The translations under genes and the position numbers were made by a program. Of a stretch of 64,000 nt of DNA, positions 5,328 to 48,103 are shown piece after piece. A model generated the notes under the pieces. The model made no database searches, had not been told where the DNA came from, and worked only from the letters and a program-made list of their open reading frames with translations. Positions within the stretch are counted from its first letter, which is position 1, and each line of letters begins with the position of its first letter. The stretch lies in the sequence record NC_023719.1. The stretch is one strand, 5' to 3'.

Positions 5328-5410
5328 AATCACACAGAGGGATTAAATTTCTGGTTATATATTTATATTAAATCAGATTTTAAATCCCTCTGAGTGAATC
5401 TCAGTGATTT
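5328..5410. repeat. Dispersed inverted-repeat element (CAGAG family), copy 1
   Basis: AATCACACAGAGGGATTAAA ... TTTAAATCCCTCTGAGTGAAT flanking TATATATTTATAT. Confidence 0.75.
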
Positions 5411-5517
5411 AAAATTACTATATACATAGTTCTATAAATAAAAAATATTAGTTATTTACAAATGATGGGAATTATTATATAATAAATATATAAGGTTTTG
5501 TAGAAGGAGGAGTAGAA

Positions 5518-6756
5518 ATGAACATTCGAGAGCAAGCGGAAGAGTTAATGAAAGCTAAATTAAATGGTATGTTTCTTAATATTTTAAATGATTTCCCGCA
5601 ACTTTCTGATTCTCAAAAAGAAGAGTACCTTAATCAGTTTAAACATCGTTTCCCTTCTGATAAATTTAAAATAATATCACAAATGCAAAAAGCTGAAACA
5701 AATTTAGGGATACTTCGAGTAATCGAACGTCACTTGGGCAATGGTTCAAGTAGATTATCAGATGAAGCTGAAAGAAAAACTAAGCATCGACTTATGAGAG
5801 ATTTTGGTATAACACCAGATCAAACTGAAACTTTTGATGAATATTTGCGTTCAGTAATTGCTGATAACAAAAAAGAGCGTGTGTTTACATCAGAACCAGA
5901 AGCGATTGAAGAAGAAAAAAAAGTATCTTCTTTAGAGTCTTTAAATAAACTAATAGGGTTAGAAAAAGTAAAAGAACAAGTTCAAGGGTTAATAGCCCAC
6001 GAAGAGATCTCTAAATTAAGGGCTTCTCATGGATTAAAACATCAAAAGCATACATTACATATGATGTTTAAGGGTAACCCAGGAACTGGTAAAACAACAG
6101 TGGCGAGATTATTAGGTGAAATATTTAAAGAAATAGGAGTCTTAAGTACAGGGCATGTTGTTGAGATTGATAGAGCAAGCTTAGTATCTAGATATCAAGG
6201 TGACTTTGAAGAGCGAGTAACAGAGTTTGTAAATAAAGCTAAGGGTGGAATTTTATTTATTGATGAAATTTACTCATTATTTGACTCTGGTAAGGGTGAT
6301 GACCAATCTCAACGCGGTATACCAGTACTCCTTAAGTTAATAGAAGATCAAAGAGAAGATTTTATTTGTATTGGTGCAGGTTATACAAAAGAAGTTAATC
6401 AATTTTTAGAAAGTAACCCTGGCTTGAAATCTCGCTTCCCAGTTCATATTGAATTTGATGATTATACTGAAGAGCAGTTAATAGCAATAGCTACAAGCAT
6501 GCTTGGAAGTCAAGATTATAAAATGGATGATGAATTTATAGAGAAGTTTAAAAAGTGTGTCGAAGAAGAGAAGCAACATAAAGACTTCGGTAATGCACGT
6601 ACAGTAAGAAATATTATTGAATCATCTATTCGTCAGCAGTCTTTGCGTTTATTTAGTATTGATAAACAAGATTTAAATAAAGATAAGCTTTCAACAATTA
6701 TTGGCGGAGACTTTAAATATGAACCATTAAGACTTGAGGAAGAAGAAGCTCTATGA
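5518..6756 (+). CDS. SpoVK/CbbX-like AAA+ ATPase
   Basis: LIGLEKVK, HMMFKGNPGTGKTTVAR, GGILFIDEIYSL, NPGLKSRF, FGNARTVRN. Confidence 0.92.
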   Translation: MNIREQAEELMKAKLNGMFLNILNDFPQLSDSQKEEYLNQFKHRFPSDKFKIISQMQKAETNLGILRVIERHLGNGSSRLSDEAERKTKHRLMRDFGITPDQTETFDEYLRSVIADNKKERVFTSEPEAIEEEKKVSSLESLNKLIGLEKVKEQVQGLIAHEEISKLRASHGLKHQKHTLHMMFKGNPGTGKTTVARLLGEIFKEIGVLSTGHVVEIDRASLVSRYQGDFEERVTEFVNKAKGGILFIDEIYSLFDSGKGDDQSQRGIPVLLKLIEDQREDFICIGAGYTKEVNQFLESNPGLKSRFPVHIEFDDYTEEQLIAIATSMLGSQDYKMDDEFIEKFKKCVEEEKQHKDFGNARTVRNIIESSIRQQSLRLFSIDKQDLNKDKLSTIIGGDFKYEPLRLEEEEAL

Positions 6757-6858
6757 GTTTCTTTTTTTTAATTATTTTTAAAAAAATAGTTTACAAATGC
6801 AATATATTATGTTATAATTTATTTATAAGGTTAATCAATTATAAGGAGGCAATACAAT

Positions 6859-7203
6859 ATGAATGTTAAACAAATTGGTTTTTCAGAATTCAATGAGTCA
6901 ATGAAAGAAAGTAATGGAGATGGGATTGTATTATTAGGTGCTGGTGGACCTGCTGATGAATGGATTGATGGAGTGACTGGTATGTTACATGATAAAGGTA
7001 TTGTAAGTAGTGCGAATCCTGAAGAGGTTTGGGGAGAGGCATTTAAACTTTCAACATCCGGAGGTCGAACAGACTTAGCATTGACTTTCAATAGTAAAAT
7101 GGAATTTAAAATGGGAATGATGGCTATGTGGCGTATTGGATTTGGGGATTGTTCTTGGATAAGTGATTATGTAGTGAATTATCAAGATCAACATATATCT
7201 TAA
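6859..7203 (+). CDS. hypothetical protein
   Basis: Promoter, AAGGAGG RBS, terminator. Confidence 0.85.
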   Translation: MNVKQIGFSEFNESMKESNGDGIVLLGAGGPADEWIDGVTGMLHDKGIVSSANPEEVWGEAFKLSTSGGRTDLALTFNSKMEFKMGMMAMWRIGFGDCSWISDYVVNYQDQHIS

Positions 7204-7334
7204 GTCAATAAGGGCTGACAAGAAGTCAGCCTTTTTTTATACATATGTTTAAAATATTCATATCTTATTTATATAATATTTAATAAATTAAAATGAATTA
7301 GATCCTATTTCATAAGTGTGGAGGGTTTAGATAA

Positions 7335-7886
7335 ATGAAGATTAATAATGTAAGCGCACAAGATAAGAGGAAGTTTTTACGTATTATGTTGGATAAGTTA
7401 GATTTCAGTAAGCGCGATTTCGCATGGGTAAAAGATTTTTTATTACATCGACAGAATTATGCAAAAACACTAAAGAAAATACATTTTGTCGATAACCCTG
7501 AAGGGCTGAATAATATTATTATTTTATCTGACAAATATAAGTTGGGTGGAACTGCTTTGCATCTTGTGACAGATAATACTATCATCACTGATGTAGATCA
7601 AATTAATGAAATGATAAATGAAGCAACAGCTAGAAAGCGTTTTTATCTTTATGTCAATACTGATGAGAATTTAATGAAGTTTGAAAGTTTTATTAATATA
7701 GTGTTAGACAATAATAAAGCTAAAATGCCTGAAGAGTATGTTAAAGCAGCTGATGATATAATTGCGCAAGCAATGAAAGAAGCTGAGATACAGCAGTTAT
7801 CTAAAAAAATTGATGAAGCTCTTGATGATAATGATAAAGAATTATTTTATGATTATACTAATCAATTGAAAGAGTTGAGAAAATGA
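7335..7886 (+). CDS. YpiB/ReoY (UPF0302)-like protein with C-terminal IDEAL domain
   Basis: KRKFLRIML..KRDFAWVKDFL..IHFVDN resembles YpiB; IDEALDDNDKELF. Confidence 0.75.
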   Translation: MKINNVSAQDKRKFLRIMLDKLDFSKRDFAWVKDFLLHRQNYAKTLKKIHFVDNPEGLNNIIILSDKYKLGGTALHLVTDNTIITDVDQINEMINEATARKRFYLYVNTDENLMKFESFINIVLDNNKAKMPEEYVKAADDIIAQAMKEAEIQQLSKKIDEALDDNDKELFYDYTNQLKELRK

Positions 7887-8236
7887 ATCAAGAAGAATTA
7901 TCCAAGAGAGTTGATAGCATACGCAATTGTTTGGTAGATATGAAGCAGAGATTAAATAATAGGTTATACTATATAAATAACTTGGATCAAGCAAGTGATG
8001 AAATCGTTGTTTCAATTGTAAATGAGCAACTTGCGAATGGCATTACTACAGATGTATTAAAAAGTATTCTTTTTATATTGGAGACAAAAGAAAATGATTT
8101 AAATTTGTTATTAGATATACTTAATGAACGGAATGATGTAGAAGTAGATACAAGAGAAGGTTCTTTTATTAATGACATGTTTATTGATATTGAAGCTTAT
8201 TTAACAATGATTGAAAAAATGTTTACAAATGTTTAG
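7883..8236 (+). CDS. hypothetical protein
   Basis: Overlaps upstream stop (ATGA coupling). Confidence 0.8.
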   Translation: MNQEELSKRVDSIRNCLVDMKQRLNNRLYYINNLDQASDEIVVSIVNEQLANGITTDVLKSILFILETKENDLNLLLDILNERNDVEVDTREGSFINDMFIDIEAYLTMIEKMFTNV

Positions 8237-8289
8237 TAATGTGATATAATTAATTTATAAATAAAAATAAATTAATTGGAGTGGTAAAT

Positions 8290-8463
8290 ATGAATTTTCA
8301 ACAGTATCTATTTAAAGAGTATCGTAAGGGTTGGGATGAAATACGTGATGATTTAATCTTTAATGGGTTAGAAGAAGATGAAATACGTGAAAGAGAAAAC
8401 CAATTAATTGAAGAGTATGAAGATTATTGTGAAGAATCTGGTATTGATCCTGAAGTTGTGTAA
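8290..8463 (+). CDS. small acidic hypothetical protein
   Basis: GGAGTG-gtaaat-ATG; the track starts at the GTG inside the RBS. Confidence 0.8.
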   Translation: MNFQQYLFKEYRKGWDEIRDDLIFNGLEEDEIRERENQLIEEYEDYCEESGIDPEVV

Positions 8464-8514
8464 AATTATTTGAAAATTGTAAATAATTTCTCAGTTTTGG
8501 TATATAATATAATT

Positions 8515-8700
8515 AAGAGGAACGCTACCCTCGAGGATGATCGTTTAACGGCTAGGCAGGCGTCAGCCATCTGTGTTTTAACAGTTGCCTGGGCTTTCAC
8601 TGAGCAATCGCATACCAGTTATGCATAATGATTGCCTTCTGAAACGTATAGGGTCATATTTACAAAGAGAACTTGGGACGGAACCCCTAAGTTCTCTTTT
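8515..8700 (+). ncRNA. candidate structured small RNA
   Basis: TATAAT at 8503-8508, no ORF, GC-richer, nested stems, strong terminator 8664-8700. Confidence 0.65.
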
Positions 8701-8835
8701 ATTTTGTAGTTAAATGAAGCTTAAAATAGTTAAAAAATAGTGTTTACATTGTGAATTGAATATGATATAATTAATTTATAAGGTAGGAAGGAAATAAACC
8801 TTATAAAATAATTAATTATATTGGAGGAATTATAA

Positions 8836-9129
8836 ATGAATTATTTTGACAAAGTGTATATCGAGGAAATGGGTTTCTATGGTGACGAGGAAATGGCTAA
8901 GGAATTTAAAGGCGCGGTAAGCGTAGAACAAGTAAAGGAATTTAAACAAATCTTAGAAAACAATGATTTAATGAAAAAAAATGAAAAACTATGCGATTTC
9001 CATGTTACAACTCTTGACGATGTGTTAATGGTAATGAAACGAGACAAAGTTGATTTCAAGCAAGCTGTTGATTACATGATTCAAGAGTATAATGGCCAAT
9101 TAAAGGAAATCGCGGGAGTTTTAAATTAA
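8836..9129 (+). CDS. hypothetical protein
   Basis: Cassette promoter, GGAGG RBS, terminator. Confidence 0.85.
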   Translation: MNYFDKVYIEEMGFYGDEEMAKEFKGAVSVEQVKEFKQILENNDLMKKNEKLCDFHVTTLDDVLMVMKRDKVDFKQAVDYMIQEYNGQLKEIAGVLN

Positions 9130-9170
9130 ATAAAAAAGGATAGGGGTAAAATCCTATCCTTTTTTTTATT

Positions 9171-9245
9171 TCACCAGAGATTGGTTCAGGTGAATCGAAA
9201 TTTCAATTCCAATATAAATATATTATTAAAATTCTCTGGGTTCAT
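9171..9245. repeat. Dispersed inverted-repeat element, copy 2
   Basis: TCACCAGAGATTGGTTCAGGTGAATC identical to 28792-28817. Confidence 0.85.
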
Positions 9246-9328
9246 TTAAAAAAAATATAAAAACGGTTTACAAATGTATAGTAATGGGATATAATATATA
9301 TAAGGAAATAAAATATAGGGGTGTTATA

Positions 9329-9700: not shown

Positions 9701-9801
9701 ATAAAATTAAGGTTAGGGGTAAAACCCTATCCTTTTTTATTAAAAAACCGTTTACAAAATGATAGTTATATGATATAATAAATATATAAATAAGAAACGG
9801 A

Positions 9802-11663: not shown

Positions 11664-11721
11664 ACGGTATAGAAAGAAAGAAATAATTAAATATAAGGGC
11701 TTCGGCCCTTTTTTAATGCCT

Positions 11722-11905
11722 TGTGCCAGATAACTCTGGGAAAACGAATAATATAAATATATAACCATGTTAATTTCGAATCACGAGAACCAATCTCTGG
11801 TGACTGGGTTTTTATTTATTAGGGTTACCCTGAGTATTTATTTATGGTATAATATAAATATATTAAAAATAAATAAAAAACCCAGACAGGGTATCTGAGT
11901 GAATT
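11722..11905. repeat. Two adjacent dispersed inverted-repeat elements (copies 3a, 3b)
   Basis: 11772-11803 is the reverse complement of the 9171/13039 motif; CCCAGA-N7-TCTGAGTGA at ~11880-11901. Confidence 0.8.
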
Positions 11906-11970: not shown

Positions 11971-12528
11971 TTAGATTACTTCTTTATCTTCAGCTTCTGT
12001 ATTTTCATCTACTGGTTTTCCATCACGTTCACGTAATTCAACTCGGTCGAAGTCAACTGATAGGAAAGTTTTTTGTAGTTCACCAGTAGTTGGATGGATT
12101 AAGTATCCTTTGAAAGCATTTTTCTTCGTACTTGGTTGTTTAACTTGAACTTTACGTCCAATTAAATCTTTACCACTTACGATTTCCACAACATCTCCTT
12201 CTTTGAAGATAAATGCTCCTTCTTCTTCAAACCATTTTTGAGCTTTTGCAACTGTTACTCGGCGGCGTGGTTGGTTTTCACCATTTCCAGAAGTTTCATT
12301 TGTTGTATTTTCTTCAACTTCATCTTGGTACTCTTCAACTACTGGCATTTCAGCTTCACCATTGTTGATTTTAGTAATCATTTGGTTAACTTTTTCAAGT
12401 AAAGTATCTTTTGGAACACCTACGTATGGAATATTTAATCCTTTTGCTTTTTCAGCGATATCACGGTAACCCGCATCCTTCGGTAAAAGTTCCATTGCTA
12501 CCACTTCTGTGTTTTGAATTGTTTCCAT
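11971..12528 (-). CDS. paralog family A protein (N-terminal helical domain + KW(F/Y)EEEG + SH3/KOW-like domain)
   Basis: Clear homology to 33083 and 40972; start ATG 12528 after GGAGG. Confidence 0.9.
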   Translation of the reverse strand: METIQNTEVVAMELLPKDAGYRDIAEKAKGLNIPYVGVPKDTLLEKVNQMITKINNGEAEMPVVEEYQDEVEENTTNETSGNGENQPRRRVTVAKAQKWFEEEGAFIFKEGDVVEIVSGKDLIGRKVQVKQPSTKKNAFKGYLIHPTTGELQKTFLSVDFDRVELRERDGKPVDENTEAEDKEVI

Positions 12529-12733
12529 TTTCAATTCCTCCAATGTTTTATTATATTTTTATTATACCACATAAGGTCCATTTTGTAAATACCTTTTTTA
12601 AAAATTTTTAGGGATTTTTTAAATTTGGTATTTACCTTCCTTCCTTATGATTTAATAATATCACATTATATAGTAATTGTAAACTATTTTTTATGGTTTT
12701 TTTAGTAATGTTACTATATAATAGGAAAGAATA

Positions 12734-12958
12734 TTATTGAGCGCTTTTCTTTTCGTTAATACGATCAATAATTTCTTGTTTTCTTAAGCCCGTGTAATCA
12801 ATGCCTAGTTTGTGAGCTTCTCTAGCGACATCTTCAAAACTTACGTATTCAGAAATCTTTTGTTTGATTTCTTCAATACTTAATCCTTTACAATTAATAT
12901 AACATTTTTTTGCTTTTTCAATCCAGACTTTTCTTTCTTCTCGTTTAGTTAGTGTCAT
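12734..12958 (-). CDS. small protein with the family A N-terminal domain
   Basis: AHKLGIDYTGLRKQEIIDRIN matches AKELGIKYVGVKKEVIIENIN. Confidence 0.8.
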   Translation of the reverse strand: MTLTKREERKVWIEKAKKCYINCKGLSIEEIKQKISEYVSFEDVAREAHKLGIDYTGLRKQEIIDRINEKKSAQ

Positions 12959-13035: not shown

Positions 13036-13112
13036 ATTCCCTCAGGGTTGGTTCTGGTGAATCGAAATTTCCTTGGTAATATGATTATAAATACCAATTA
13101 TTCTCAGGGCAC
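13036..13112. repeat. Dispersed inverted-repeat element, copy 4
   Basis: CCCTCAGGGTTGGTTCTGGTGAATCGAAATTT. Confidence 0.8.
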
Positions 13113-13195
13113 AATATATTTTTTAAAAAATTATTTACAAAATATAGGGTATATGATATAATTAAATTATAAATAAATAAGGAGTGTTTTTAATA

Positions 13196-14872: not shown

Positions 14873-15039
14873 GGGTGCCATCTTGGCCCCTTTTTTTATT
14901 TTTATATATGAATTATAATAAAGAAAATTGGAATTAAATCTGGGTGATTCTAGTGATTTAAAAATAATTGTAAAAACTATTTACATAATACTATTGGTAT
15001 GATATAATAAATATATAAATAAGGAATGGAGTGGTAAAT

Positions 15040-19016: not shown

Positions 19017-19019
19017 TAT

Positions 19020-19690
19020 GTTCCACTTGCTTAGCAAGTTCCACAGAGAGGTTATCCAACCTCTCGCCTTCTCTCTTTTCTTTTGCTTCTTTTTTTTGAT
19101 CTCTTCTTTGATCTCAAGATGTACTTAACACTTCTTCAGGTAGGCAAGCTTGAAGTGTAGAAGTGGACACACTTCTATCCCCCTGACAGTAGAAAACACT
19201 CAAGAAATACGAGAGAGCACACTACTATCTAAAAGGGGAGATCACTTAACTCTTCTTCAGTATAGGCTAAGAATTTCGTGCCGTAGCGTATCTTTTGCAA
19301 GACTCTTCCAGGTCTGTCGTTACAGAGTATGTTATTTCTAATATTTGGCTACGTTCCCTCACTTGCAGCTTAATTATGAATCCAACAGTTTCCAGTGGTA
19401 ATTAAGAAGCATCACAGGACGGTTAACTAACATGGTGAGTGTTAGTTGCTTCTGGAAATGATTGACGTTCCCCATCTAACGGACCATCTATGGACTGGTA
19501 TCACCATTCACTATTACCATGAGTTTATCCATAGGTGGTCACTATCCACTACTCCTCAGTTGACGGCTGAACAGGTTTTGTAAAGTATCTTTTAGATCAA
19601 CTTCATTGTTAAGAGTTTAGATACTTAGCTACAATCGTTATTACACACAAAAACCCTTACTAACAACGTACGCTAGTAAGGGTTTTCTAC
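19020..19690 (+). ncRNA. candidate large, highly structured ncRNA
   Basis: No credible ORF; GC-richer; many 6-13 bp stems; G-U pairs favour plus strand; terminator 19650-19690. Confidence 0.7.
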
Positions 19691-19694
19691 TTTG

Positions 19695-19875
19695 CAAATT
19701 TGCTCACTAAAAATTTAAATATCTTTTAAGATATTGTTATAAAATGAGTGCCACTTTCATATAATGTATATGAAAGAGCTTTGGAAAATAGAAAACAACT
19801 AGTACCAGTAGTTGTTATTCTAGTTATTGAGATGCTGTCAACATTTCAATAACCCAAGTTCTTTTTTATTTTGAA
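19695..19875 (+). ncRNA. tandem hairpin array downstream of the large RNA
   Basis: Back-to-back stems such as CTTTCATATA/TATATGAAAG, AACAACTA/TAGTTGTT, GTTATTGA/TCAATAAC. Confidence 0.5.
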
Positions 19876-20055
19876 CTTAACGAGTATTATGTATTTTTTT
19901 ATCTTTACGTTTATTGAATACAAGTTGTTTTATGCAATATAACCATTTTTACATACTTATTTACAAAGACAACTAAAATTTATTTAAAAAACAGTTTACA
20001 AACTATGCATATCGTGATATAATTAAATTATAAATAAGGAACGGAGTGACGTAAA

Positions 20056-23455: not shown

Positions 23456-23878
23456 ATAAATAAAGGAATGAAGATTTAAGAACTGACAGAGTCACAGGGT
23501 GATTCTAATAAGGAATCAAATAGTTGATTATTTACTAGAGGTATAACCCTCAATTTGATGTTTACTCCCATCAAAAAAATTTTCTTTTTTCTTTCTTTCT
23601 TGTCACATGGAACTTGTATCTATTCATGGAGATACAATGAAACTCTGAGTTGATGGTTTAAAGAGTTTCGAAGTTTATCTTGAGCATTAGACTTTTTCTA
23701 ATGTTGAATATAAACTACTCTTTAGATCAAGTGGTTTATGCACTATCACTTCCTCTAATTTATTTACCTTATATGGAGCCCTCATCTAAGAACGTTATGG
23801 AGATGAGCAGTAAGTTTGGCAGATGCGGTTTTGGAACTTACACTAAAAGAGATATCTTAAATGATATCTCTTTTTTTA
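23456..23878 (+). ncRNA. candidate multi-hairpin sRNA from its own early promoter
   Basis: Promoter 23421-23449, no RBS-led ORF, about 10 consecutive stems, terminator 23847-23878. Confidence 0.6.
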
Positions 23879-25538: not shown

Positions 25539-25850
25539 TTCATTCTGTTTTTAATTTTTTAAGGATATATAAAATAATACAAAAATACATACAAAATCAC
25601 CCTGTGATTAAAGTGAATCACTAAAGAATAATCTATTTATAATAGGAAAAAATAAAAAATTTAGTAAAATAGAATACAGTGCACAGCACTTATCTTTATA
25701 TATTTCTTTTATATATTATCTATAATATTAATTATATTTATAGCTGCACACTTTGAATCAAACTGCACCTTTTGAATTAGTTTTTATAAAAACAGTTTAC
25801 AAACTATACTAATGATGATATAATGTATATATAAGGAAGGAGAATACAAA

Positions 25851-28773: not shown

Positions 28774-28790
28774 AAGGAGTCTTTTTTTAT

Positions 28791-28862
28791 GTCACCAGAG
28801 ATTGGTTCAGGTGAATCAAAATTTATTAAATAATATATATCTATTATTCGTTGTTTCTGAAA
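28791..28862. repeat. Dispersed inverted-repeat element, copy 9
   Basis: 26 bp identical to 9171-9196. Confidence 0.85.
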
Positions 28863-28917
28863 AACAATTTACAAATAGGGAAAAACGTGGTATAATATAT
28901 ATATAAGGAGTGATAAT

Positions 28918-33082: not shown

Positions 33083-33892
33083 ATGGAAACAATTAAAAAG
33101 ATGGAATTATTACCTGAAAGCGCTGGGTACCGCGATGCTGCTAAAATTGCAAAAGAATTAGGTATTGCTTATGTTGGAGTTAGTAAAGGCGATTTAATCA
33201 CTAAAGTAAATGAAAAAATTGAAAAAATTAATAATGGCGAAATTGAAGTACCAGTTATTGAAGAAACTGCAGATCCAGTTGACTCTAAAGATACAACAAA
33301 TGAAGAAACTGTTGCTAAACCAGCAGGAACTGAAAGTCCGGCTCAACAAGCTGCACAAACTGCAAGAGCAAAACGTGAAAAAGCTCCAAAAGTTGAAGTT
33401 AAAAAATGGTACGAAGAAGAAGGTGCAAACCCTTACGAACCAGGTGATGTAGTTAAAATCATTGGTGGTAAAGACTTAATTGGCCGACTACTTAAAACAA
33501 TTGAACCATCAACTAAAAAAGATATGATCAAAGGTAAGTTAATCCACCCAGTAACTGGAAAATTACAAAATACAGTAATTTCAATTGCATTCGAACGACT
33601 TGAATTACATCAAAAAGCTGCAGAAGCAGAAGCTGCTGAAAAAGCAAAGGTTGAAGCAGAAGCTGCGGCAACAAATGTTGAACAAGCTACTGAAGCTCCA
33701 GTAAACCAACAAGCTCAAGTTGAAGAAGTAAAAAATGAAGAAGTAACTCAAACTGAAGATCAAGAAGTAAAAGAAGTAAATGAAAATCCTGAAAATCAAG
33801 AAAACAAGGAAGAAATTACTGCTGGCGCAGAAGAAGAAATTACTGTGAAACAAGAAGATGAGCAGCAAAATGAAGTAAAAGAAGCTGAATAA
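33083..33892 (+). CDS. paralog family A protein with long acidic tail
   Basis: Homologous to 11971 and 40972; tandem promoters upstream. Confidence 0.9.
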   Translation: METIKKMELLPESAGYRDAAKIAKELGIAYVGVSKGDLITKVNEKIEKINNGEIEVPVIEETADPVDSKDTTNEETVAKPAGTESPAQQAAQTARAKREKAPKVEVKKWYEEEGANPYEPGDVVKIIGGKDLIGRLLKTIEPSTKKDMIKGKLIHPVTGKLQNTVISIAFERLELHQKAAEAEAAEKAKVEAEAAATNVEQATEAPVNQQAQVEEVKNEEVTQTEDQEVKEVNENPENQENKEEITAGAEEEITVKQEDEQQNEVKEAE

Positions 33893-33942: not shown

Positions 33943-34028
33943 TTTCACCAGAAAATACATAAAAATCAGTTTAATATAAATAATATAAACATAAAAACAA
34001 AAATCTCTGAGGGAATCTCAGTGACCCA
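33943..34028. repeat. Dispersed inverted-repeat element, copy 10
   Basis: TCACCAGA...ATATAAATAATAT...CTCTGAGGGAATCTCAGTGA. Confidence 0.75.
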
Positions 34029-36942: not shown

Positions 36943-36982
36943 GTTTAATTAAATTCCACTAATATCATATATATAATCAGAG

Positions 36983-37180
36983 GTGATATTAGTGGAATTT
37001 AAAACTACAAGAGAAATAACTATAGAAAATCTTAATAGCATTCTAATTATTCCCGAAGGTGCTACTTTATATCAAATACCTAATGATCATTTAGGGAATG
37101 TTAGAGATGTTAATCATTATAGTTGGAATGGGGAAATCATTGCTATTGAGAAAGACTCTGATTCAGTAGAAAAAGTTTAG
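36983..37180 (+). CDS. hypothetical protein
   Basis: GAGGTG RBS. Confidence 0.7.
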   Translation: MILVEFKTTREITIENLNSILIIPEGATLYQIPNDHLGNVRDVNHYSWNGEIIAIEKDSDSVEKV

Positions 37181-37857: not shown

Positions 37858-38065
37858 CAGGGAGTTTTCCCTGCACCTTCTAATAAGGATTTAAATACTT
37901 TAAGTCTTTATTAGAGGGTCTCACTCCACCCTCTCGATATCATTCGATATTAGTATTACCTTTATATGGAACTGAGGACTGTAGCACCATGGAAGTCTCC
38001 AGAGAACTAGTTGGTATGTGGTTTGGGTTCTCACTTAAAAGACAGATAATTATCTGTCTTTTTTT
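37858..38065 (+). ncRNA. tandem-hairpin 3'-UTR or sRNA candidate upstream of tnpB
   Basis: Consecutive stems GCAGGG/CCCTGC, CTAATAAGG/CTTTATTAG, GAGGGT/ACCCTC, GAGAAC/GTTCTC; terminator 38037-38065. Confidence 0.5.
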
Positions 38066-38118
38066 ATTTAAAAAATATGTACTTTCTTTCTATAATTAAA
38101 ATAGAAAGGAGGGAAACC

Positions 38119-39318
38119 ATGAAACGTTCTAAATTAATTAGGATTTCTAAAAATAATAGTAAATATAAATTAATAGATTCTTTATCTTTAAAATCTAAAA
38201 ACTTGTATAATTACGCTAATTATTTAATTAGACAAGAGTTTATTTTAAATGGGAAATGGATAAGATATAATGAATTAAATAAAAGATTAAAAGAAGAAAT
38301 AGTATATAAAGAATTACCAATCCAAACATCTCAACAAACACTCATGTTATTGGATAAAAATTGGAAATCTTACTTTAACTCGATAAAAGATTGGTCTAAA
38401 AATAAAAGTAAATATTCAGGCAAACCAAAACTACCTAAGTATAAAAAGAAAGATGGGAGATTTAATGTAGTTTTTACTAATCAACAAGCAAAACATAAAA
38501 ATGGGATTATTAAAATTTGTCCAGCAAGTTTGGATCTTATTTTTAATATCAATATTGAAAACAAAATAAAACAAATTCAAATAATACCTAAAAATAATTT
38601 TTATCAATTGGAAATAATCTATGAAATTGATAAAAAAGAAGTGGAATTAAATGACGAATTATATTGTGGGATTGATTTAGGAATTAATAATCTTATAACT
38701 TTAACAGATAACCTGCATAATAATCCAATTGTTATCAATGGTAAAATTATTAAGTCTATAAATCAATATTACAATAAGAAAAGAGCCGAAATACAATCTA
38801 CTTTACTAATAAAAAATAAAAAAACTTGGTCAAATAAGCTAACTCAATTAACTGAAAAAAGAAATAATAAAATAAAAGATTATATGCATAAGAGTTCTAG
38901 ATATATAATTAATTATTGCTTATCTAATAAGATAAAAACAATAGTGATTGGATATAATCAAAATTGGAAAGAAAGACTTATTGTCTCAAAACAACAAAAT
39001 CAAAATTTCTTTCAAATTCCTTATTTAACTTTAATTGAAATGATACAATATAAAGCTGAAGAATATGATATAGATGTTATACTAACTGAAGAATCTTATA
39101 CTTCCAAAGCTAGTTTTTTAGATTTAGATGAGATGGAAAAAGATTTTAAATTTAATGGAGAAAGAATAAAAAGAGGATTGTATAAGACTAATAATGGTAT
39201 TTTAATAAATGCTGATGTAAACGGTTCTTATAATATAATTAGAAAAGTAGCTCCAAATGTTTTTACAGATGGAGTAGAGGGTGTAAAGTTACATCCATTG
39301 AAAATTAATTTTTCATAA
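38119..39318 (+). mobile_element. tnpB: solo TnpB (IS200/IS605 family, IS1341-like) RNA-guided nuclease
   Basis: GIDLGINN (RuvC-I), IVIGYN, TEESYTSK, NADVNGSYNI (RuvC-III), GVEGVKLHP tail; no tnpA nearby; ATG 38119 after AAGGAGG. Confidence 0.9.
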
Positions 39319-39431
39319 ACTTATAACTAGGAACTCCGATTGTATCATAATATAGATGATGTAAAGATACCTTTAATGGTATCTTTTTTATTTGTCTTCT
39401 ATCTCTATAACCTAATAGTTTACTATGGTAA

Positions 39432-39552
39432 ACACATACGCTCGCGCGTGTGTATATGTACTACACGTATGCATCTGTGCATCTATGTGCTCGTATATAC
39501 GTATGTGCATGTATACGCGCTTGCTATATATATACTTACGTACATGTATATG
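39432..39552. repeat. alternating purine-pyrimidine tract
   Basis: ACACATACGCTCGCGCGTGTGTATATGTAC...TACATGTATATG. Confidence 0.85.
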
Positions 39553-39979
39553 ACGAACTATGATAAAACAATTCAATAATTCTGTTAAGTACATAAAAGT
39601 AGAATCATAAGAGAAAATGAGACTTCAAAATTAGATAAGGAATATTTCATTTTGATAATAAATCTTAAATCAATCAACAATCATAACTCAGATGAAATCA
39701 GAAGATTAAATAATAATCTTTCTATATTGAGTATTAGAATATTTTATTCAAAATAATACGATTATTCTATCATAAAAATCTAATTTTGAAAACACATAAT
39801 AGATAAAGGTTGTAATCGCAAGTGTAATAAGAAAATAGAGTAATGCTTAATGGAAGAAACAAATTGATTTAGTAATGATATTAGCAATTGTTTTTAAAAT
39901 ATTGTTTACATAATTCGATAATTATGTTATAATGAATATATAAGGAAATGGTATATATATGAAGGGAGTAGTTTAAATA

Positions 39980-40294: not shown

Positions 40295-40971
40295 TAATCA
40301 TGATAAATTAATTAGCTACTAACTTTAAATTAGTAGCTTTTTTATATTTGTATTATTTTATATATTATAAGTAGTTACTCTATAGTTTGATTAAATATAG
40401 TATATTACATTAACTAACATTTGTAAATAGTTTTTTGATTATAAATAAAGAAAATGATAATCACTAGATGATTGCTGAGGATGACCCAGTTTTTATTAGA
40501 TATATATTTATATATCTCAAATAATCTCTGAACACAAAACTATTTTTATAAAAACAATTTACATAGCAATAAAGATGTCATATAATAAATAGATTTAAAA
40601 TGAAATAGAACTGGTTAAGAGATCATTACATTATTACGGGAGTTAAGTTGAGTTAAATTTGATTTGATAAACATATGAGAGAAACCGCCGATAAGATAAG
40701 TGTGAGTATATTATCTATAAGCACAAGTAAAGGATTAAACTCACTTAAATAATTTATTTAAAAAAAATTAAAAAACCATTTACAAATACAAAGTTATGTG
40801 ATATTATTAATATATAAGGTAATACAAATTCAAACCTTATAAAAATTATATCCTAAAAAATTAAAAAATTTTAAAAAAACTATTTACAAATACCAAGTAA
40901 TAGGATATAATAAATATATAAGGTAAGGAATTAAAAAAACCTTATAAAAAAAACTTAAGGAGTGTTCAATT

Positions 40972-41415
40972 ATGAAAAAAGTAAACATGGAAACTAAATT
41001 CAACGTGGTAAAGGAAATGGCTAATGAATTAGGAATTAAATATGTAGGAGTTAAAAAGGAAGTTATCATTGAAAATATCAATAACAAAATTGATGAAATC
41101 GAGGCTTCAAAATCTCAGGAATCACAAGAAACACCAAAGGAAACTAAAAAAGCTGGGAAATGGTATGAACAAGAAGGAGCATTTCCATACACAGAAGGGA
41201 CTCTAATGATTATTACAAATCACCCTAACAAAGCAATTGTTGGAAGAATGGTGGAAGTATCTGGACCATCAACAAAAAGAAATGCAGTTAAATGTTTCCT
41301 AATAAGTGGAAAGAATGGACAAAAACAAAAAACTCACCTATCTCTAGATTTCGATATGGTCACTGAACATACTCCACAATATCCAGCATTAATTCCTTCA
41401 ATCATCACAGCATAA
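40972..41415 (+). CDS. paralog family A protein
   Basis: ELGIKYVGVKK, KWYEQEGAF, VSGPSTKRN. Confidence 0.9.
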   Translation: MKKVNMETKFNVVKEMANELGIKYVGVKKEVIIENINNKIDEIEASKSQESQETPKETKKAGKWYEQEGAFPYTEGTLMIITNHPNKAIVGRMVEVSGPSTKRNAVKCFLISGKNGQKQKTHLSLDFDMVTEHTPQYPALIPSIITA

Positions 41416-43676: not shown

Positions 43677-43896
43677 TATATAGTGAATAAGAAGCAATTG
43701 TGCATAGGTTTAGAACGACATAAATGAACAAAATAGAAAGTAGTAAAAATAACGCACAGCGTTAAAATTACAAAAACAGAATAGTTCAAAAAGATCGATA
43801 GATTGATGAGTAAAAACCAACAAGTTGGTGATGAAAAAAAATAATCTATTGATTTAAAGTGTCGTAGATGTAGTTGCACATATAGGGGGTAATTAG

Positions 43897-44301
43897 TTGA
43901 ATGTAGAAGAAAAAATAGATAATATCATTGAAGAACAATCATGTAGAATGCAAGTAGCATGGGCGCTTGCTGGGTTTACGGGTAAAATTGTATATAAAAA
44001 ACAAATAGAAGAATCAGAGATACTTTGGGGTATAGGTGGGTATAGAAGTACTAATGTTAAGACGGCAAGAATGCCTATTAATATTATTTTTGAAAATAAA
44101 GAAATAACAATATCTCTTTCTAGGAGAGGATTAGGTATTCGTGAATCTGATTTAAAAGATTGTAAAAACTATTTTAGTAAAAATAATATTAAAAGAACTG
44201 ATAGTTTGCATCTTTTGGAATTTAAAGTAACCAATGTAGATGATTTAGTGCATTTATTTTATCTAATAGATAGAAGTAATTTCATAAAAGGATTTGAATA
44301 A
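43897..44301 (+). CDS. hypothetical protein
   Basis: GGGGG RBS. Confidence 0.7.
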   Translation: MNVEEKIDNIIEEQSCRMQVAWALAGFTGKIVYKKQIEESEILWGIGGYRSTNVKTARMPINIIFENKEITISLSRRGLGIRESDLKDCKNYFSKNNIKRTDSLHLLEFKVTNVDDLVHLFYLIDRSNFIKGFE

Positions 44302-44569
44302 GAGAAAGGGGAAATTCATGATGAGACTATTCAGTAGAAAAAGACCAGAACTTAAAAAAGTAAATTATGGCACCCTATTTGGAGAGAAGAAATTCGTAAA
44401 AGGGTATCAAATGATAAAGGATAGAGAGTTTTCAGATGTTGAGGTGAGAATCTTGTTGTCGATGTTGGGAGTTGCTTTACATAGGGGAGATATGAAAGAA
44501 TTTGAAGCATTTCTTGATGAAAAGAAGAAAGCGTTTGAAGAAATGAATAAGAAAGATAAAGTTCAATAG
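44294..44569 (+). CDS. hypothetical protein
   Basis: Operon ORF. Confidence 0.7.
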   Translation: MNKRKGKFMMRLFSRKRPELKKVNYGTLFGEKKFVKGYQMIKDREFSDVEVRILLSMLGVALHRGDMKEFEAFLDEKKKAFEEMNKKDKVQ

Positions 44570-44835
44570 AGTCTTCATATAGAGGATTCTAGAAAGAGTT
44601 TGATTTTGGACTGGGAGGCGATAATACCCCAGCTAAAGTAATATATAAAAAGGCACTTTAATGAGTGTCTTTTTTTTATTTATTTAGTGTATCTACATAG
44701 AGGTGGGCCCATTGTTATTAATTTAATTACTTATTTTATATTTTAAATAGACATAGTATGTCTGTACTAGTGTTTAAAAAACAAAATGTTTAAAACAATT
44801 AATTTGTTTTTTGCATGAAGGGAGGGAGTAATAGT

Positions 44836-47800
44836 ATGTCGTTTTCACGTAATGATAAGTTTAATGCTGATCGTAACTTTGTTAGAGTGAGATTTGGTAA
44901 GGGTAAAGTTTTATTAGAATCAGAATTAAACGAAATGCAGAAGATTCTTACACAACAAATTAGAAATAGCAACAAAATTATTTTTGAAGATGGTTTTGTA
45001 GGTATTCAACATGTAAAGTATGAAAATGCTATATTTAGATTTTTAGTTGATTACTACATTCAAGATGGATTAATTTATCCATTGGGAACTGAAATGGTAC
45101 TGAATATATCTAATACTAAAACAGAATATGATATTTATTTTGAAGCGCAAGAACTTACTGTAAGTTATGCTGATAAAATACCTAACAAAGGTAATTTAAA
45201 CATGAACGAATTAATTTCCATTTCTGATATTTTAGATGTAGAAGTAGAGATAGAAGATAAAGAAACATCTAGAAGAGTTCAATGGCAATATAAGCTAGTG
45301 TTGGTTGCTAAAGGTACAAATTATACTGGTAATGGTAAATTAATTGCTAATATTTCTTCTAATGGTGTACTTACTACGATAGTTGAAGAAAGTAAAAACG
45401 CGATCCAAACAATTTATGATGACCATCTTGTGCCTTTACAAAATGGATATGAAAACTTAAGAGAAAAAGTTGATTCTCAAGGTATCACTGTAACTTCTTT
45501 ACAAGATAAAGTAAACGTAATAGAAACAACAAGTGTTAGATCTGTGAATAATAGTTTCCCAAATGTTGATGGCGACATTACTATTGGTATTCCAACTAAC
45601 ACGAGTGAATTAAATAATGATAGTGAATTTACTACATCTAGTTTTGTTGATACAAAAGTTGAGGAAGTAAAGGATTTTGTAAAAACTGAAATAGACGCAA
45701 AAAATTATATCATTAATCCGAATAAATGGAAAGGAGCAAGCGTTTCTGTATTTGGAACTTACACATTTGATTCAATTTATCAATCCGTAAAGGATTTGAA
45801 TGTCAATATTTTGACAATACCCGTAAATGTTGAAGCAGTTAGTTTAACTGACTCTGAGCCGAAAATTAATCAAGCTCAATTTACTAAAGTGAAAGATGTT
45901 GTTGCTCGTTTATTAGAAAAAGGAATAAGAGTTATTCTAGAACCATTCCCATTAATTGGAGAAGGTAAATTGGTTGAAACAGAATGGAATCCATCAGATC
46001 CAAACTTATGGTTTACTCATTGGGGAAATGCATTAAAAGAGCTAGCTCAATATTCACAAGAAAATAATTTAGAAGCATTATATATAGCGAGTAACTTTAC
46101 GCACATGGAACAACACATAACTAAATGGGAATCTTTAATCTCAGATGTCAGAGCGATATATAATGGTAAGATATTGTATAGAACTAGCTGGTGGATTACA
46201 GCTTCTTGGGCTCCAGAAACAGTTACAGCGTATCAAGCTAAACTAAACAATCCAATTTATGGTTTAGTGGATGTTATTTCTATTGCTGCATACTTTGAAT
46301 TAACTGATAATTCAGATGCTAGTGTTGATGATTTAATAGCGAATATCTATAGTGTTTCTTTATTTGGAAGAGGACAAAATGTATTCCAAGAAATAAAGAA
46401 TTTTAATGATAAATGGAATAAGCCTATCTTCTTTGGTGAATTAGGTATTGCGCCATATAAAACTGCTTATTCTCAGCCTTGGCAATTCCAATTCGATGGA
46501 GCGTTATATGATGAGAAGATCCAAAGTAGATGGTTCGATGCTTTCTATCAAGTATTCCATAAGGAAGATTGGTTCAAAGGGTTCTCTATTTTCGCAGTAG
46601 ATGATGAAACTTCTGAATATAAAATAAGACAAAACAACGTCTCTCAATTAGCTCTATATGATTTTAATAAAAACAATGAAAATCCATTTAAAAATTATAT
46701 AGATAGTGAGTTAAAGAGAAAAGTTGATAATTCTCAATTAGAAGAATATAAGAAAAAGTTAGATGACGCTGAGTACACTATTAGCAAACTTGGATATGTA
46801 CCACCAAGTAGAAAAGGAAGGCTTGTTACAGATTTCAGTAAGTTTGTATTATGGTATGGAATAGTTGCGCAAGATACTGAACATGTAATAGTTGGTCCTT
46901 CTTCTGTGAAAGTCACAACAGATACTGCTAATACTACAGCAGCTGCTCGTTTACGTAGTACTAAATATAATTTCTCTAAAGCTAAAAATATGACAATTAG
47001 ATTTTATGTAGAAGATATAAATAAACTATCTAATATTGAGTTGAGATTATCTTCAGTAGATAATATGACTAGCTATTTATCTTGGAAAACCACAAAATGG
47101 AAAGTTGTAAATGGATGGAACGAAGTAATGATTCCACTTTCTAAACTCACTGCTACAGGCGGAGAGCTAATAACTAATACTATTACAACAATTCAAATTA
47201 GCGTAACTGGAGATCATACTTCTGTAATATTTGATAGTATTTTTGTTAATAGGAAAAGTAATGCTAATGTAATGTTCCAATTTGACGATGGTTGGTTATC
47301 AGTTTATACTAATGCATTCCCAGAAATGCGCAGTAGAGGAATGGTCGGTAATGTTGGTGTTATTAGTAACTCAGTTGGCACTAATAACTATATTACTTTA
47401 AATCAGTTTAAAGAATTGCAAAATTATGGTTGGGAAATGTTTAATCACACTGTAACACACAGGGATTTATCTCTATTAACAGAAGAAGAAATAAGAACGG
47501 AGCTTAATGGTTGTAGAGATTGGTTAATAGCGAATGGATTTAAAACTGCTGCTAATTTTGTAGCTTATCCTTATGGTAATTCAAACGATGCAGTATTTGA
47601 AGTAATGAAAGATTTTGAATTTGGAAGAACAGTGAGAGAAGAATATGAAGTGCTTCCGCCTATTAATCCACATCGTTTAAAGTGTTTTACATTTGATAAT
47701 GCTATAGACGTAAGTGTTGCTACAAATGCGATAGATCACGCTATAGAATGTGGTGACACAGTAATTTTCTTATTCCACAAAATAGAAGCAAACACTAATA

Positions 47801-47913
47801 CAGAAACAATTAATTACCCAATAGATAAATTTATACAAATTTTAGATTACATCTATGATAAATTAGATAAAATTGATGTAATCACTTGTAGTGAATTTGC
47901 AAATATTCGTTAA
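44836..47913 (+). CDS. virion/tail-associated multi-domain carbohydrate enzyme: DUF4815-like anchor + GH113-like TIM barrel + beta-sandwich + CE4 polysaccharide deacetylase
   Basis: FVRVRFGKGKVLLESELNEMQ; ILEPFP...DVISIAAYF...PIFFGELG; FQFDDG...WEMFNHTVTH...AYPYG...IFLFH. Confidence 0.75.
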   Translation: MSFSRNDKFNADRNFVRVRFGKGKVLLESELNEMQKILTQQIRNSNKIIFEDGFVGIQHVKYENAIFRFLVDYYIQDGLIYPLGTEMVLNISNTKTEYDIYFEAQELTVSYADKIPNKGNLNMNELISISDILDVEVEIEDKETSRRVQWQYKLVLVAKGTNYTGNGKLIANISSNGVLTTIVEESKNAIQTIYDDHLVPLQNGYENLREKVDSQGITVTSLQDKVNVIETTSVRSVNNSFPNVDGDITIGIPTNTSELNNDSEFTTSSFVDTKVEEVKDFVKTEIDAKNYIINPNKWKGASVSVFGTYTFDSIYQSVKDLNVNILTIPVNVEAVSLTDSEPKINQAQFTKVKDVVARLLEKGIRVILEPFPLIGEGKLVETEWNPSDPNLWFTHWGNALKELAQYSQENNLEALYIASNFTHMEQHITKWESLISDVRAIYNGKILYRTSWWITASWAPETVTAYQAKLNNPIYGLVDVISIAAYFELTDNSDASVDDLIANIYSVSLFGRGQNVFQEIKNFNDKWNKPIFFGELGIAPYKTAYSQPWQFQFDGALYDEKIQSRWFDAFYQVFHKEDWFKGFSIFAVDDETSEYKIRQNNVSQLALYDFNKNNENPFKNYIDSELKRKVDNSQLEEYKKKLDDAEYTISKLGYVPPSRKGRLVTDFSKFVLWYGIVAQDTEHVIVGPSSVKVTTDTANTTAAARLRSTKYNFSKAKNMTIRFYVEDINKLSNIELRLSSVDNMTSYLSWKTTKWKVVNGWNEVMIPLSKLTATGGELITNTITTIQISVTGDHTSVIFDSIFVNRKSNANVMFQFDDGWLSVYTNAFPEMRSRGMVGNVGVISNSVGTNNYITLNQFKELQNYGWEMFNHTVTHRDLSLLTEEEIRTELNGCRDWLIANGFKTAANFVAYPYGNSNDAVFEVMKDFEFGRTVREEYEVLPPINPHRLKCFTFDNAIDVSVATNAIDHAIECGDTVIFLFHKIEANTNTETINYPIDKFIQILDYIYDKLDKIDVITCSEFANIR

Positions 47914-48103
47914 GTAATTTTTAGAGAAGATATTCATTTATCTTCTCTTTTTTTATTTTACAATCATACAATATGATTATTATTTAATAACAGAGTTTAA
48001 TTCTGAGTGAAAATAAATGAATATGAATGATAAATATAATGATGGTAAAATATTTTAATTTCTTTTAACTTTTACATAAAATGAAAATAAAAAGGGGATA
48101 AAA

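Follow-up and report, generated by a model that had tools for sequence, protein, structure and literature searches.

The stretch analyzed here, termed the window, is the final 64 kb of the 497.5-kb Bacillus phage G genome. Its early-gene region carries a family of eight two-armed elements of 75–95 bp (Table 1). The eight elements are real and previously undescribed; the phage G literature that was searched makes no mention of them. On the left the elements carry the motif TCAC(N)CAGAG and on the right the motif CTCWGRG; between them lies a core, ATATAWWTATAT, that is AT-rich and quasi-palindromic. The spacing between the left and right motifs is 63.0 ± 3.0 bp in 8/8 elements. All eight are intergenic and lie inside 35 kb of the genome, and no further family member is found elsewhere in its 497.5 kb. 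As a sequence-only reading of this DNA had proposed, they are located between terminators and promoters or in a convergent gap, in either orientation. That reading had listed about 14 copies, which is too many. The sequences it quoted are present at all 14 coordinates, of which eight are composite elements and the other six are lone half-sites or different hairpins and palindromes. At site 18614 a T-run and the core follow a leader hairpin, sites 23486 and 25595 share a separate palindrome, TCACCCTGTGA, and site 43022 is a GC-rich structured stretch; none of these belongs to the family.

Table 1. Elements and associated features in the window (positions are those of the window)
Feature	Site as listed	Position	Strand	Left motif	Core	Right motif	Remarks
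F	5328	5328..5410	+	5330-5339	5357-5368	5388-5398	Near-perfect long palindrome after gp595 terminator; second tandem right-type motif 5400-5409
A	9171	9170..9243	+	9171-9179	9212-9223	9234-9240	A–D subfamily; box ~9182-9203; between gp601 terminator and gp602 promoter
B	11722	11720..11806	-	11795-11803	11751-11762		A–D subfamily, reversed; convergent gap after gp607 terminator
G	11822	11812..11902	-	11894-11902	11852-11863		Long palindrome, AT-rich; tandem with B; downstream of gp608 terminator; composite pattern matches
gp608 + gp609		11971..12958	-				Bracketed by inverted copies B and C
C	13036	13036..13113	+	CCCTCAGGG 13039-13047		13103-13109	A–D subfamily; box 13048-13069; between divergent gp609 and gp610 promoters
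Lone half-element	14939	14937..14960	+				Two tandem right-type motifs, ~-72 and -62 from gp613 promoter (-62 counted from the sequence by hand)
D	28791	28790..28866	+	28792-28800			A–D subfamily
E	33943	33944..34028	+	33945-33952	degenerate	34005-34011	After gp652 terminator; tandem second motif follows right motif; matches relaxed three-part pattern
H	40459	40459..40533	+	TCACTAGAT 40461-40469	exact, 40502-40513	CTCTGAA 40526-40532	Right motif ~-65 from promoter at 40558 (counted from the sequence by hand; CTCTGAA is outside the scanned end motif)
Lone half-site	47990	47990..48012	+				TCTGAGTGA at 48002-48010, after gp673 terminator
Iteron array		49960-50400					12 direct ATAGATAG repeats

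The exact core ATATAAATATAT has six copies in the window, 6/6 of them intergenic and within flagged sites, and just 11 copies in the entire phage G genome. The composite pattern (TCAC, 0–1 nt, CAGA, 18–45 nt, core) gives 5 matches in the window vs 0.00 in 100 shuffles, and a scan of the other 460 kb of the genome gives zero. The intergenic DNA at 438–475 kb of the record, 10.4 kb in total, contains 8 copies of TCAC(N)CAGA, where 0.31 are expected and 300 simulations gave a maximum of 3; the enrichment is limited to early-region intergenic DNA. Taken literally, the half-sites of the sequence-only reading occur at background frequency: AATCACTG is found 4 times vs 2.2 expected and TCACYCAGA, with one mismatch allowed, 18 times vs 16.6 expected, and GTGAAT and CAGTGA show no enrichment. 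The original observation is partly upheld: the composite family stands, and the other six sites listed, together with the loose half-sites, do not. Motifs are arranged inverted about 63 bp apart, inverted 7 bp apart or in tandem 11–12 bp apart, and such a variety of arrangements is the usual picture for binding-site arrays. No copies of the elements were found in the host.

Elements A, B, C and D are homologous across approximately 85 nt (nhmmer E-values 1e-17 to 1e-20); the following match in the genome already has E > 1. The 26-bp identity that had been noticed between two copies is confirmed and is shared by A and D. Conservation in A–D is mosaic; a 22-nt box, TTGGYTCWGGTGAATYGAAATT, displays 83% identity and the remainder 55%. 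The box recurs in metagenomic relatives, where the flanking genes have no phage G homologue. The RNA fold of A–D is not better than that of shuffled sequences (z between -0.3 and -1.6). This weak folding and the mixed orientation of the copies argue for a role at the DNA level and not at the RNA level.

A role in RNA would have the elements form hairpins in read-through transcripts, which are cut by RNase III or which stabilise 3′ ends, on the model of T7 and SP82, whose early mRNAs have processing sites between genes. The long stems of F (-29.1 kcal/mol, z = -5.5) and G (z = -2.5) are compatible with this, as is the co-orientation of 6/8 elements with the upstream gene. However E and H, like A–D, fold no better than shuffles or only marginally better, the elements lie downstream of strong intrinsic terminators, B and the copy in the relative L148 have the opposite orientation, and the elements have no match in Rfam, even at E = 0.5 or below. 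Such a role appears very improbable.

The arms of F are 33 nt long, 79% complementary and 2 nt apart, and the composite pattern is found on both strands of this element. The F arms resemble the AGAGGGATTAATTTCCCTCT terminator family (family D19), and 24 nt of G show 92% complementarity with the gp608 promoter in its -10 region. The apparent partial construction of F and G from terminator stems and a promoter -10 region suits an origin as by-products. In addition, TAAATATAT is found both in the core and immediately 3′ of the canonical -10 (TGATATAAT-AAATATATAA). The family might consist of non-functional relics, i.e. debris, palindromic or chimeric, that derives from terminator stems and promoter -10/start regions and was left by illegitimate recombination or template switching where cassettes meet. 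This is quite unlikely given the mosaic conservation of the 22-nt box in phage G and relatives, the 63-bp geometry that is constant in eight copies, and the TCAC part of the motif, which is absent from terminators and promoters.

The elements had been described as not being promoters. This is correct for sigma-A promoters with the exception of the + strand of G, which alone scores well; G has the top sigma-A score among the elements and displays an extended -10-like sequence, TGGTATAAT. A factor-dependent promoter may be present within A–D. A T4-type late promoter was considered and rejected; TATAAATA is no more frequent in the late region than expected by chance.

Element ends are found at about -63 from adjacent sigma-A promoters. 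Each end of C is at -63 from one of the two divergent promoters (gp609 and gp610), the right end of A is at -65 from the gp602 promoter, and the right end of D enters the UP region of the gp642 promoter. Ends near -63 are limited to A, C (both ends), H and the lone 14939 site; F and E end farther from their promoters, and B and G face none. In a set of 474 non-redundant promoters from phage G and relatives, CTCWGRG is at -63 to -66 in 8 of its 20 upstream occurrences (binomial P = 2e-8); C contributes both of its ends, one for each divergent promoter. Several cases in relatives are homologous copies and hence not independent, and P is 6e-5 if the independent cases are taken to number just 5. 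Elements are found in only 7 intergenic gaps, vs 45 plus-strand promoters over the same span. The fixed position could alternatively be that of an inserted module adjoining a promoter cassette of constant length.

The most likely function is that of binding a protein which controls or organises the early transcription units. The elements are putative operator-like protein-binding boundary modules that are also recombination substrates, a reading to which a tentative probability of about 0.35 is given. They would be cis-acting boundaries at the DNA level, between the terminator of the prior cassette and the promoter of the next early cassette. We infer that a sequence-specific DNA-binding protein, either phage-encoded or of the host, reads the 9–11 bp motif TCAC(N)CWGAG. 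With two facing motifs about six helical turns (63 bp) apart across a core that may be easily bent or melted, a dimer or higher oligomer could grip the two ends together, with the DNA wrapped or looped. The outer end adjoins the A/T-rich UP region of the promoter at about -63, and protein bound there may raise or shut off the neighboring sigma-A early promoter; it could also stop read-through from the upstream unit. The 22-nt box of A–D appears to be under selection and probably carries an additional site. We know of no operator consensus that fits the element motif. More distant metagenomic contigs that share the early-promoter module, among them one of 188 kb and one of 476 kb, have their own inverted-repeat inserts, which carry a TCACTCTGAG motif and are found at the same terminator/promoter junction.

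gp608 and gp609 are the sole minus-strand genes in positions 1–34 kb of the window. Elements B and C, which flank this inverted module, form an inverted repeat of 62 nt that is 73% complementary, with the copies 1214 nt apart. In the relatives L146–L148 the gp608 homologue is co-oriented with its neighbors. gp608 belongs to a paralogue family (phrog_25189) that includes gp652, gp665 and the N-termini of gp609 and gp624, and members of this family adjoin elements B/G, C, E and H. The structure model displays a pair of helices at the N-terminus, with a weak Rho_N match, and its C-terminal part is a KOW fold that resembles the C-terminal domain of NusG/Spt5 (Foldseek E = 5.6e-4).

If the elements are protein-binding modules, as dispersed repeats they would in addition serve as recombination substrates, and the gp608–gp609 inversion would be the visible case. 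Another interpretation is that the significance of these boundary sequences is mainly recombinational, in the shuffling, inversion and loss of early cassettes, similar to the PeSLs of T4-type phages. The bracketing of gp608–gp609 by B and C and the co-oriented homologues are in keeping with this, as are the dense promoter-gene-terminator cassette array of the region and the gene neighborhoods near elements, which are wholly different between relatives. However the window's canonical promoter modules, 57 in all, are much more abundant than the elements and resemble each other more closely, and thus would dominate homologous exchange. Identities of 55–83% over ≤85 nt make poor substrates, and the conserved box and fixed anatomy are left unexplained. 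This interpretation is considered unlikely.

Of the options put forward in the sequence-only reading, protein binding, recombination and MITE-like elements are viable, and segregation and secondary origins are not supported. Secondary replication origins or centromere-like segregation sites would agree with the AT-rich centre between inverted motifs, and phage G does encode, elsewhere in the genome, proteins annotated as partition-type and as a nicking initiator. However, the elements contain no iterons, origins would hardly be expected to number eight in 35 kb, the annotated partition gene lies at a distance of 50 kb with no par genes nearby, and the iteron array (Table 1) is a much better origin candidate. 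It is extremely improbable that the elements have such a function.

As MITE-like non-autonomous mobile elements or selfish palindromes, the elements would use the terminator/promoter junction as their insertion point and propagate both inside individual phage G-like phages and from one such phage to another, with any effect on expression incidental. The uniform size, inverted terminal motifs, AT-rich centre and presence of copies in either orientation agree with this, and in relatives the neighbor genes are unrelated and the A–D box is better conserved than the flanking genes. The relative L149 has no element E in its gp652-like to gp654-like region, however this “empty” site is not orthologous at the nucleotide level. 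Multi-copy palindromes of ~100 bp with the same TCACCAGA ends and a TATATAATTATATA centre are found in two viral contigs of ~100 kb that are unrelated; one of the palindromes lies directly upstream of a TnpB gene. On the other hand, three defining features fail. No target-site duplication is visible by sequence inspection at any copy; there is no cognate element, and the window's sole transposase-type gene, the TnpB gene gp662, has ends unrelated to the elements; and near-identical copies are absent, the copies being old and diverged, with 55% identity outside the box. Good terminal repeats are present in F only, and the elements are restricted to 35 kb of a 497-kb genome. A mobile origin is considered somewhat unlikely.

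In Correia elements the terminal repeats span 26 bp, a TA target is duplicated and near-identical copies number in the hundreds; the phage G elements show none of this. The resemblance to Correia elements and similar bacterial MITEs is in the small size, inverted ends, AT-rich centre with promoter-like boxes and intergenic location, and some copies have the potential to form hairpins. The contig palindromes mentioned above are from uncultured viruses (IMGVR_UViG_3300045594_000099 and 3300044557_000185). They share the TCACCAGA-type outer ends, an inner CTCTGTGAAC / GTTCACAGAG pair and the palindromic TATATAATTATATA centre, and are intergenic between co-directional genes. However these phages, with a GC of about 40%, are unrelated and their arms have other sequences. 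Since the search pattern demanded the left end and core, independent evidence is limited to the copy multiplicity in each contig and the symmetric right ends.

Cluster O mycobacteriophages have a compact 17-bp dyad repeat of invariant 7+3+7 bp, with >30 copies genome-wide and some within genes (PMC4351075). The phage G elements are likewise a lineage-specific repeat with dyad symmetry, an A/T-rich centre and a presumed regulatory role, but they are long, variable, strictly intergenic and regional. Stoperators are single asymmetric sites of 13–14 bp, with ~20–30 copies oriented with transcription and a known repressor. The phage G unit differs in its 75–95 bp, two arms, eight copies and mixed orientation. 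Both are dispersed families of short conserved sites, enriched in intergenic DNA, where one phage regulator is thought or shown to bind at many places; the stoperators of mycobacteriophage L5 and other Cluster A phages are discussed in PMC3029335. The PeSL (promoter-early stem-loop) regulatory cassettes known from T4-type phages are conserved short non-coding modules that border small variable genes in hyperplastic early regions and are implicated in shuffling (PMC2839356, PMC4122927). The close analogue in phage G is its own set of promoter/terminator modules. Unlike PeSLs, the elements have no good sigma-A promoter or terminator; they are a third kind of module, located between terminator and promoter, with a motif and palindromic core of their own.

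The sequence-only reading of this region proposed about 14 dispersed bipartite inverted-repeat elements. All of the sequences that it quoted are found at the positions it assigned to them, and eight of the sites are composite elements, here termed A to H, with a left motif TCAC(N)CAGAG, an AT-rich quasi-palindromic core and a right motif CTCWGRG; however, two others are lone half-sites and four are sites of other kinds. The window matches Bacillus phage G (NC_023719 / JN638751, 497,513 bp) at 100% identity. Coordinates are window positions unless termed record positions, and addition of 433,513 converts the former to the latter.

The half-sites as literally written in that reading are at background frequency: AATCACTG is present 4 times vs 2.2 expected, TCACYCAGA with one mismatch allowed 18 times vs 16.6 expected, and GTGAAT and CAGTGA show no enrichment. 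The half-sites also do not stand out in 8-mer enrichment over the whole window. This is due to the small size of the family and to the promoters and terminators, which dominate the signal. In contrast, the composite pattern (TCAC, 0–1 nt, CAGA, 18–45 nt, ATATAWWTATAT) displays 5 matches vs 0.00 in 100 shuffles, with none elsewhere when the whole phage G record is scanned, and a relaxed three-part pattern also picks up E and H and has no match in the genome beyond the window. The 12-mer ATATAAATATAT is present in 6 copies in the window, all intergenic and all inside flagged sites, and its genome total is only 11. TCAC(N)CAGA is found 30 times in the genome, and 8 of these are in the 10.4 kb of intergenic DNA at record positions 438–475 kb, where 0.31 are expected. 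Thus the family is real and is smaller than had been claimed. It is lineage-specific and previously undescribed, and its kind is that of dispersed intergenic regulatory/boundary repeats of phages. The 2025 multi-omics paper on phage G has no mention of intergenic or inverted repeats.

Flagged sites and genes of the gp608 type, with their positions in the window
Feature	Window position	Description
F	5328	composite element
A	9171	composite element
B	11722	composite element
G	11822	composite element
C	13036	composite element
D	28791	composite element
E	33943	composite element
H	40459	composite element
Lone half-sites	14939, 47990	
Other kind	18614	hairpin with T-run in gp621 leader, followed by core
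Other kind	23486, 25595	common palindrome TCACCCTGTGA of their own
Other kind	43022	GC-rich structured stretch downstream of promoter
gp608/gp652/gp665 family	11971–12528, 33083–33892, 40972–41415	

Hairpins of the AATCACTGAG...CTCAGTGATTTT type are also present at record positions 421954 and 432025 and look like terminators. The palindrome TCACCCTGTGA is found at 23492–23502 and 25597–25607 in opposite orientations (2 copies vs 0.36 expected), one copy being in a 580-nt leader without open reading frames upstream of the RsfA-like gene gp631 and the other upstream of gp634. This palindrome resembles an operator and does not belong to the main family. An exact copy of the core is found at record positions ~81041–81110, upstream of a ribosome-binding site and a short, apparently unannotated open reading frame that starts with a Cys-rich peptide.

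The distance between the left and right motifs, start to start, is 63.0 ± 3.0 bp in 8 of the 8 elements. A–D share homology across approximately 85 nt (nhmmer E-values 1e-17 to 1e-20; the next genome hit has E > 1), and the two copies noted earlier as identical over 26 bp are A and D. Conservation among these four is mosaic: a 22-nt box, TTGGYTCWGGTGAATYGAAATT, displays 83% mean pairwise identity vs 55% in the remaining sequence. The palindrome of F is almost perfect (arms of 33 nt, 79% complementary), and that of G is long and AT-rich. As terminal repeats, the elements other than F have just the 7–10 nt end motifs in common. C and B each carry one end motif in direct, not inverted, orientation, and the AA/TT asymmetry of the core is uncoupled from the orientation of the arms. 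Other repeats in the window are an exact 26-nt repeat in two intergenic regions 10 kb apart (39703–39728 and 49562–49587) and, in the gp658–gp659 gap (36949–37002), a 19-nt inverted repeat without mismatches whose arms are 16 nt apart.

That the elements act as RNA hairpins, i.e. as terminators or RNase III sites, is very improbable. F and G fold clearly (z = −5.5 and −2.5, respectively), however A–D, E and H fold no better than shuffled sequences or marginally so (A–D, z −0.3 to −1.6), and the orientation of the copies is mixed. In a search of Rfam 15, nothing reaches the gathering score, and within the elements there is no match with E ≤ 0.5. Apart from the elements, positions 19017–20055 comprise 1,039 bp without open reading frames, GC-richer and amid tightly packed small genes. 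The minus strand at 19281–19440 shows a weak, sub-threshold match to the Rfam EGFOA RNA (32.7 bits; gathering score 37.7; E = 0.04), and the region may hold a large structured RNA.

The window has a GC content of 29%, and genes gp588–gp694 are nearly all small and on the + strand. Most window genes have their own strong host-type promoter (AAAAACAGTTTACA, 14 nt, TGATATAAT) and an intrinsic terminator. These promoters number 57 in the window and 126 genome-wide, 87 of the 126 being between record positions 375 and 475 kb. The promoter modules are near-identical, of a sigma-A, T4-early-like form, and each is paired with a terminator. All elements are at the borders of these promoter-gene-terminator cassettes, placed between a terminator and a promoter that are distinct from them. 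A, D, E and F begin 3–15 nt past the T-run of the terminator upstream; G and then B come after the gp608 terminator, on the minus strand; and C is between the divergent gp609 and gp610 promoters. The elements might represent debris of terminator and promoter modules. Part of G is a promoter −10 region in inverted form, and the F arms are similar to a family of terminators; this origin is considered rather improbable.

The right motif may have a preferred position upstream of promoters. In the 160 nt upstream of 474 canonical promoters, a non-redundant set drawn from phage G and relatives, CTCWGRG is found 20 times; eight of these are at −63 to −66 and two at −53. The −63 to −66 peak has a binomial P of 2e-8, or of 6e-5 when five cases are counted as independent, as several are homologous copies. 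A is among the eight, its end being at −65 relative to the gp602 promoter, and so are the two ends of C, each at −63 relative to one of the divergent promoters. For F and E the distance between end and promoter is greater, and there is no promoter that B or G faces.

The earlier statement that the elements are not promoters is, for sigma-A promoters, borne out by weak scores inside them, except for the + strand of G. On these scores and on the location of the elements between terminator and promoter, a promoter and stem-loop content of the PeSL type was rejected. A–D contain boxes of the type GTGAAT-N17-TATAAA, which in A are on both strands and which match no sigma consensus known to us. Their spacing is inherited among homologous copies, thus a factor-dependent promoter in A–D is a lead only. 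No late-promoter consensus was detected upstream of late genes by hand inspection and a k-mer search. The T4-type late promoter TATAAATA is at chance level in the structural-gene region (13 vs 12.7 expected; 5 plus-strand and 8 minus-strand matches), therefore the core is not a promoter of this type. By informal comparison, DnaA, Rex, CRP/FNR, LexA, SinR, Spo0A, CodY, cre and parS sites do not fit the elements.

A function as replication origins or centromeres, the former having been an option of the sequence-only reading, is the least probable of the explanations: the elements have no iterons and no direct-repeat array. At a different location, the gp677–gp678 gap (49960–50400), twelve direct copies of ATAGATAG (unit ~CTAATAGATAGAAT) are on one strand at a spacing of ~25–35 nt, and inverted copies are found nearby. 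The window total of ATAGATAG is 19 vs 4.8 expected, and 0 of 100 shuffles reach 19. The array is iteron-like, a candidate for a replication origin or for an operator with multiple sites.

No close relative of phage G was found in the GenBank phage set or in IMG/VR, nor did searches with gp594 in IMG/VR and with the gp608 family in JGI contigs detect one. Homologues of gp608 (49–66% identity) are present on short metagenomic contigs that display the same promoter module. One of these, L148, has an A–D-type copy between a terminator and a promoter (nhmmer E = 4e-6), in the opposite orientation and with neighbouring genes that have no phage G homologue, and a second, L147, has a partial copy at the contig end. 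In an nhmmer search of 739 kb from relatives with the A–D profile, only L148 matched. A metagenome scan with the promoter module yielded more distant contigs, including RCUH01000011.1 (476 kb) and RCUU01000001.1 (188 kb). The A–D box is absent from this distant set, and the contigs have their own inverted-repeat inserts at the terminator/promoter junction, which end ...GATCACTCTGAGATC... just upstream of the UP region.

Bacterial genomes gave nine scattered, chance-level hits to the 22-nt box, none in Bacillaceae, and the exact arm patterns in IMG/VR found only phage G itself and chance hits, apparently coding, in unrelated contigs. The composite pattern in IMG/VR detected two unrelated contigs of ~100 kb, each carrying a ~100-bp palindrome in four to six copies. 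The palindrome has ends of the TCACCAGA type and, further in, the pair CTCTGTGAAC / GTTCACAGAG and the centre TATATAATTATATA; its copies are intergenic, one being directly upstream of a TnpB gene. The search pattern forced the left end and the core, thus independent evidence comes only from the number of copies in a contig and from the symmetry of the right ends. These suggest that the architecture of the element may be wider than the phage G lineage.

An origin as MITE-like mobile elements is possible, if somewhat unlikely. The small size, inverted ends and non-orthologous positions of the elements are compatible with it, however target duplications, a cognate element and near-identical copies are lacking. 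Inspection of the sequences that border each of the eight copies reveals no direct repeat in common. The TnpB gene gp662 is alone in the window in being of the transposase type, and no other product is named a transposase in the whole-genome annotation tables. A TnpB insertion sequence as the cognate autonomous element was rejected, as the flanks and ends of gp662 have no similarity to the elements. The gp662 protein (37858–39579) has an OrfB_IS605 domain and a Cas12f-like TNB domain; TnpA is absent, and ~260 nt of GC-rich, hairpin-rich sequence is upstream of the gene. In the metagenomic contig L149, a region comparable to gp652–gp654 is without element E and the terminator abuts the promoter; the junction cannot be aligned base for base.

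Together, B and C make up an inverted repeat of 62 nt, with arms that are 73% complementary and separated by 1214 nt. The repeat flanks gp608–gp609, the only minus-strand genes in window positions 1–34 kb. The gp608 homologue is co-oriented with its neighbours in L146–L148, and flipping gp608–gp609 back would restore a plain terminator-element-promoter order on one strand. Thus the simplest history would be an inversion of gp608–gp609 by recombination between two copies. A mainly recombinational role, as for PeSLs, would suit the inverted module and the cassette array; it is unlikely, ranking below a MITE-like origin and above module debris.

In an all-against-all comparison of window proteins, one paralogue family was found, which consists of gp608, gp652, gp665 and the N-termini of gp609 and gp624 (phrog_25189). 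Seven intergenic gaps bear an element, and four of these are next to a family member (hypergeometric P 2e-4 to 5e-4, in a test chosen post hoc). A structure model (mean pLDDT 70) displays an N-terminal helix pair with a weak Pfam Rho_N hit, a disordered linker, and a C-terminal barrel similar to the NusG/Spt5 KOW domain (Foldseek E = 5.6e-4). The predicted combination of a HeH helix pair with a NusG-type KOW domain points to a role of gp608, gp652 and gp665 in transcription or its coupling. By position only, these HeH-KOW proteins, the RsfA-like gp631 and the HTH protein gp679 are candidate element-binding proteins. It is conceivable, although quite improbable, that the elements and gp608/gp652/gp665 form one system, a DNA-tethered mimic of the NusG C-terminal domain with its own dispersed docking sites. 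The proteins, in which a nucleic-acid-binding HeH (Rho_N/SAP-like) helix pair is joined to the KOW domain, would recognise the two-armed, AT-rich elements at the borders between cassettes, the KOW domain would engage Rho, ribosomal protein S10 or RNA polymerase, and termination or read-through would be set for each unit individually throughout the early region of megaphages of the phage G type.

The elements may represent DNA-level, protein-binding boundary modules, a function inferred from sequence and given a probability of roughly 35%. This reading is the preferred one and is favored by a short motif that is enriched only in early intergenic DNA and is found in several arrangements, by ends six helical turns apart around a bendable core, by one end that abuts the UP region at about −63, and by one internal box under selection across relatives. 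The absence of both a conserved RNA fold and a fixed strand also favors it.

Phage G is the sole cultivated megaphage known to us. The defined cis-element family, with its conserved 22-nt box, apparently fixed position beside some of the early promoters and equivalents in uncultured relatives, provides a testable handle on the control of ~130 host-type early promoters and on the reshuffling of the hyperplastic early region. Should a binding protein be found, this would be the first regulatory circuit for the phage G lineage; if there is none, the family would represent a new type of small palindromic repeat that targets terminator/promoter junctions in large phages. With respect to known systems, window positions 1–43000 and record positions 375–475 kb constitute a PeSL-like cassette array. 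Elements in this array flank variable genes and the neighbouring genes are unrelated in relatives; as far as the sequence data show, the elements mark recombination breakpoints, similar to PeSLs.
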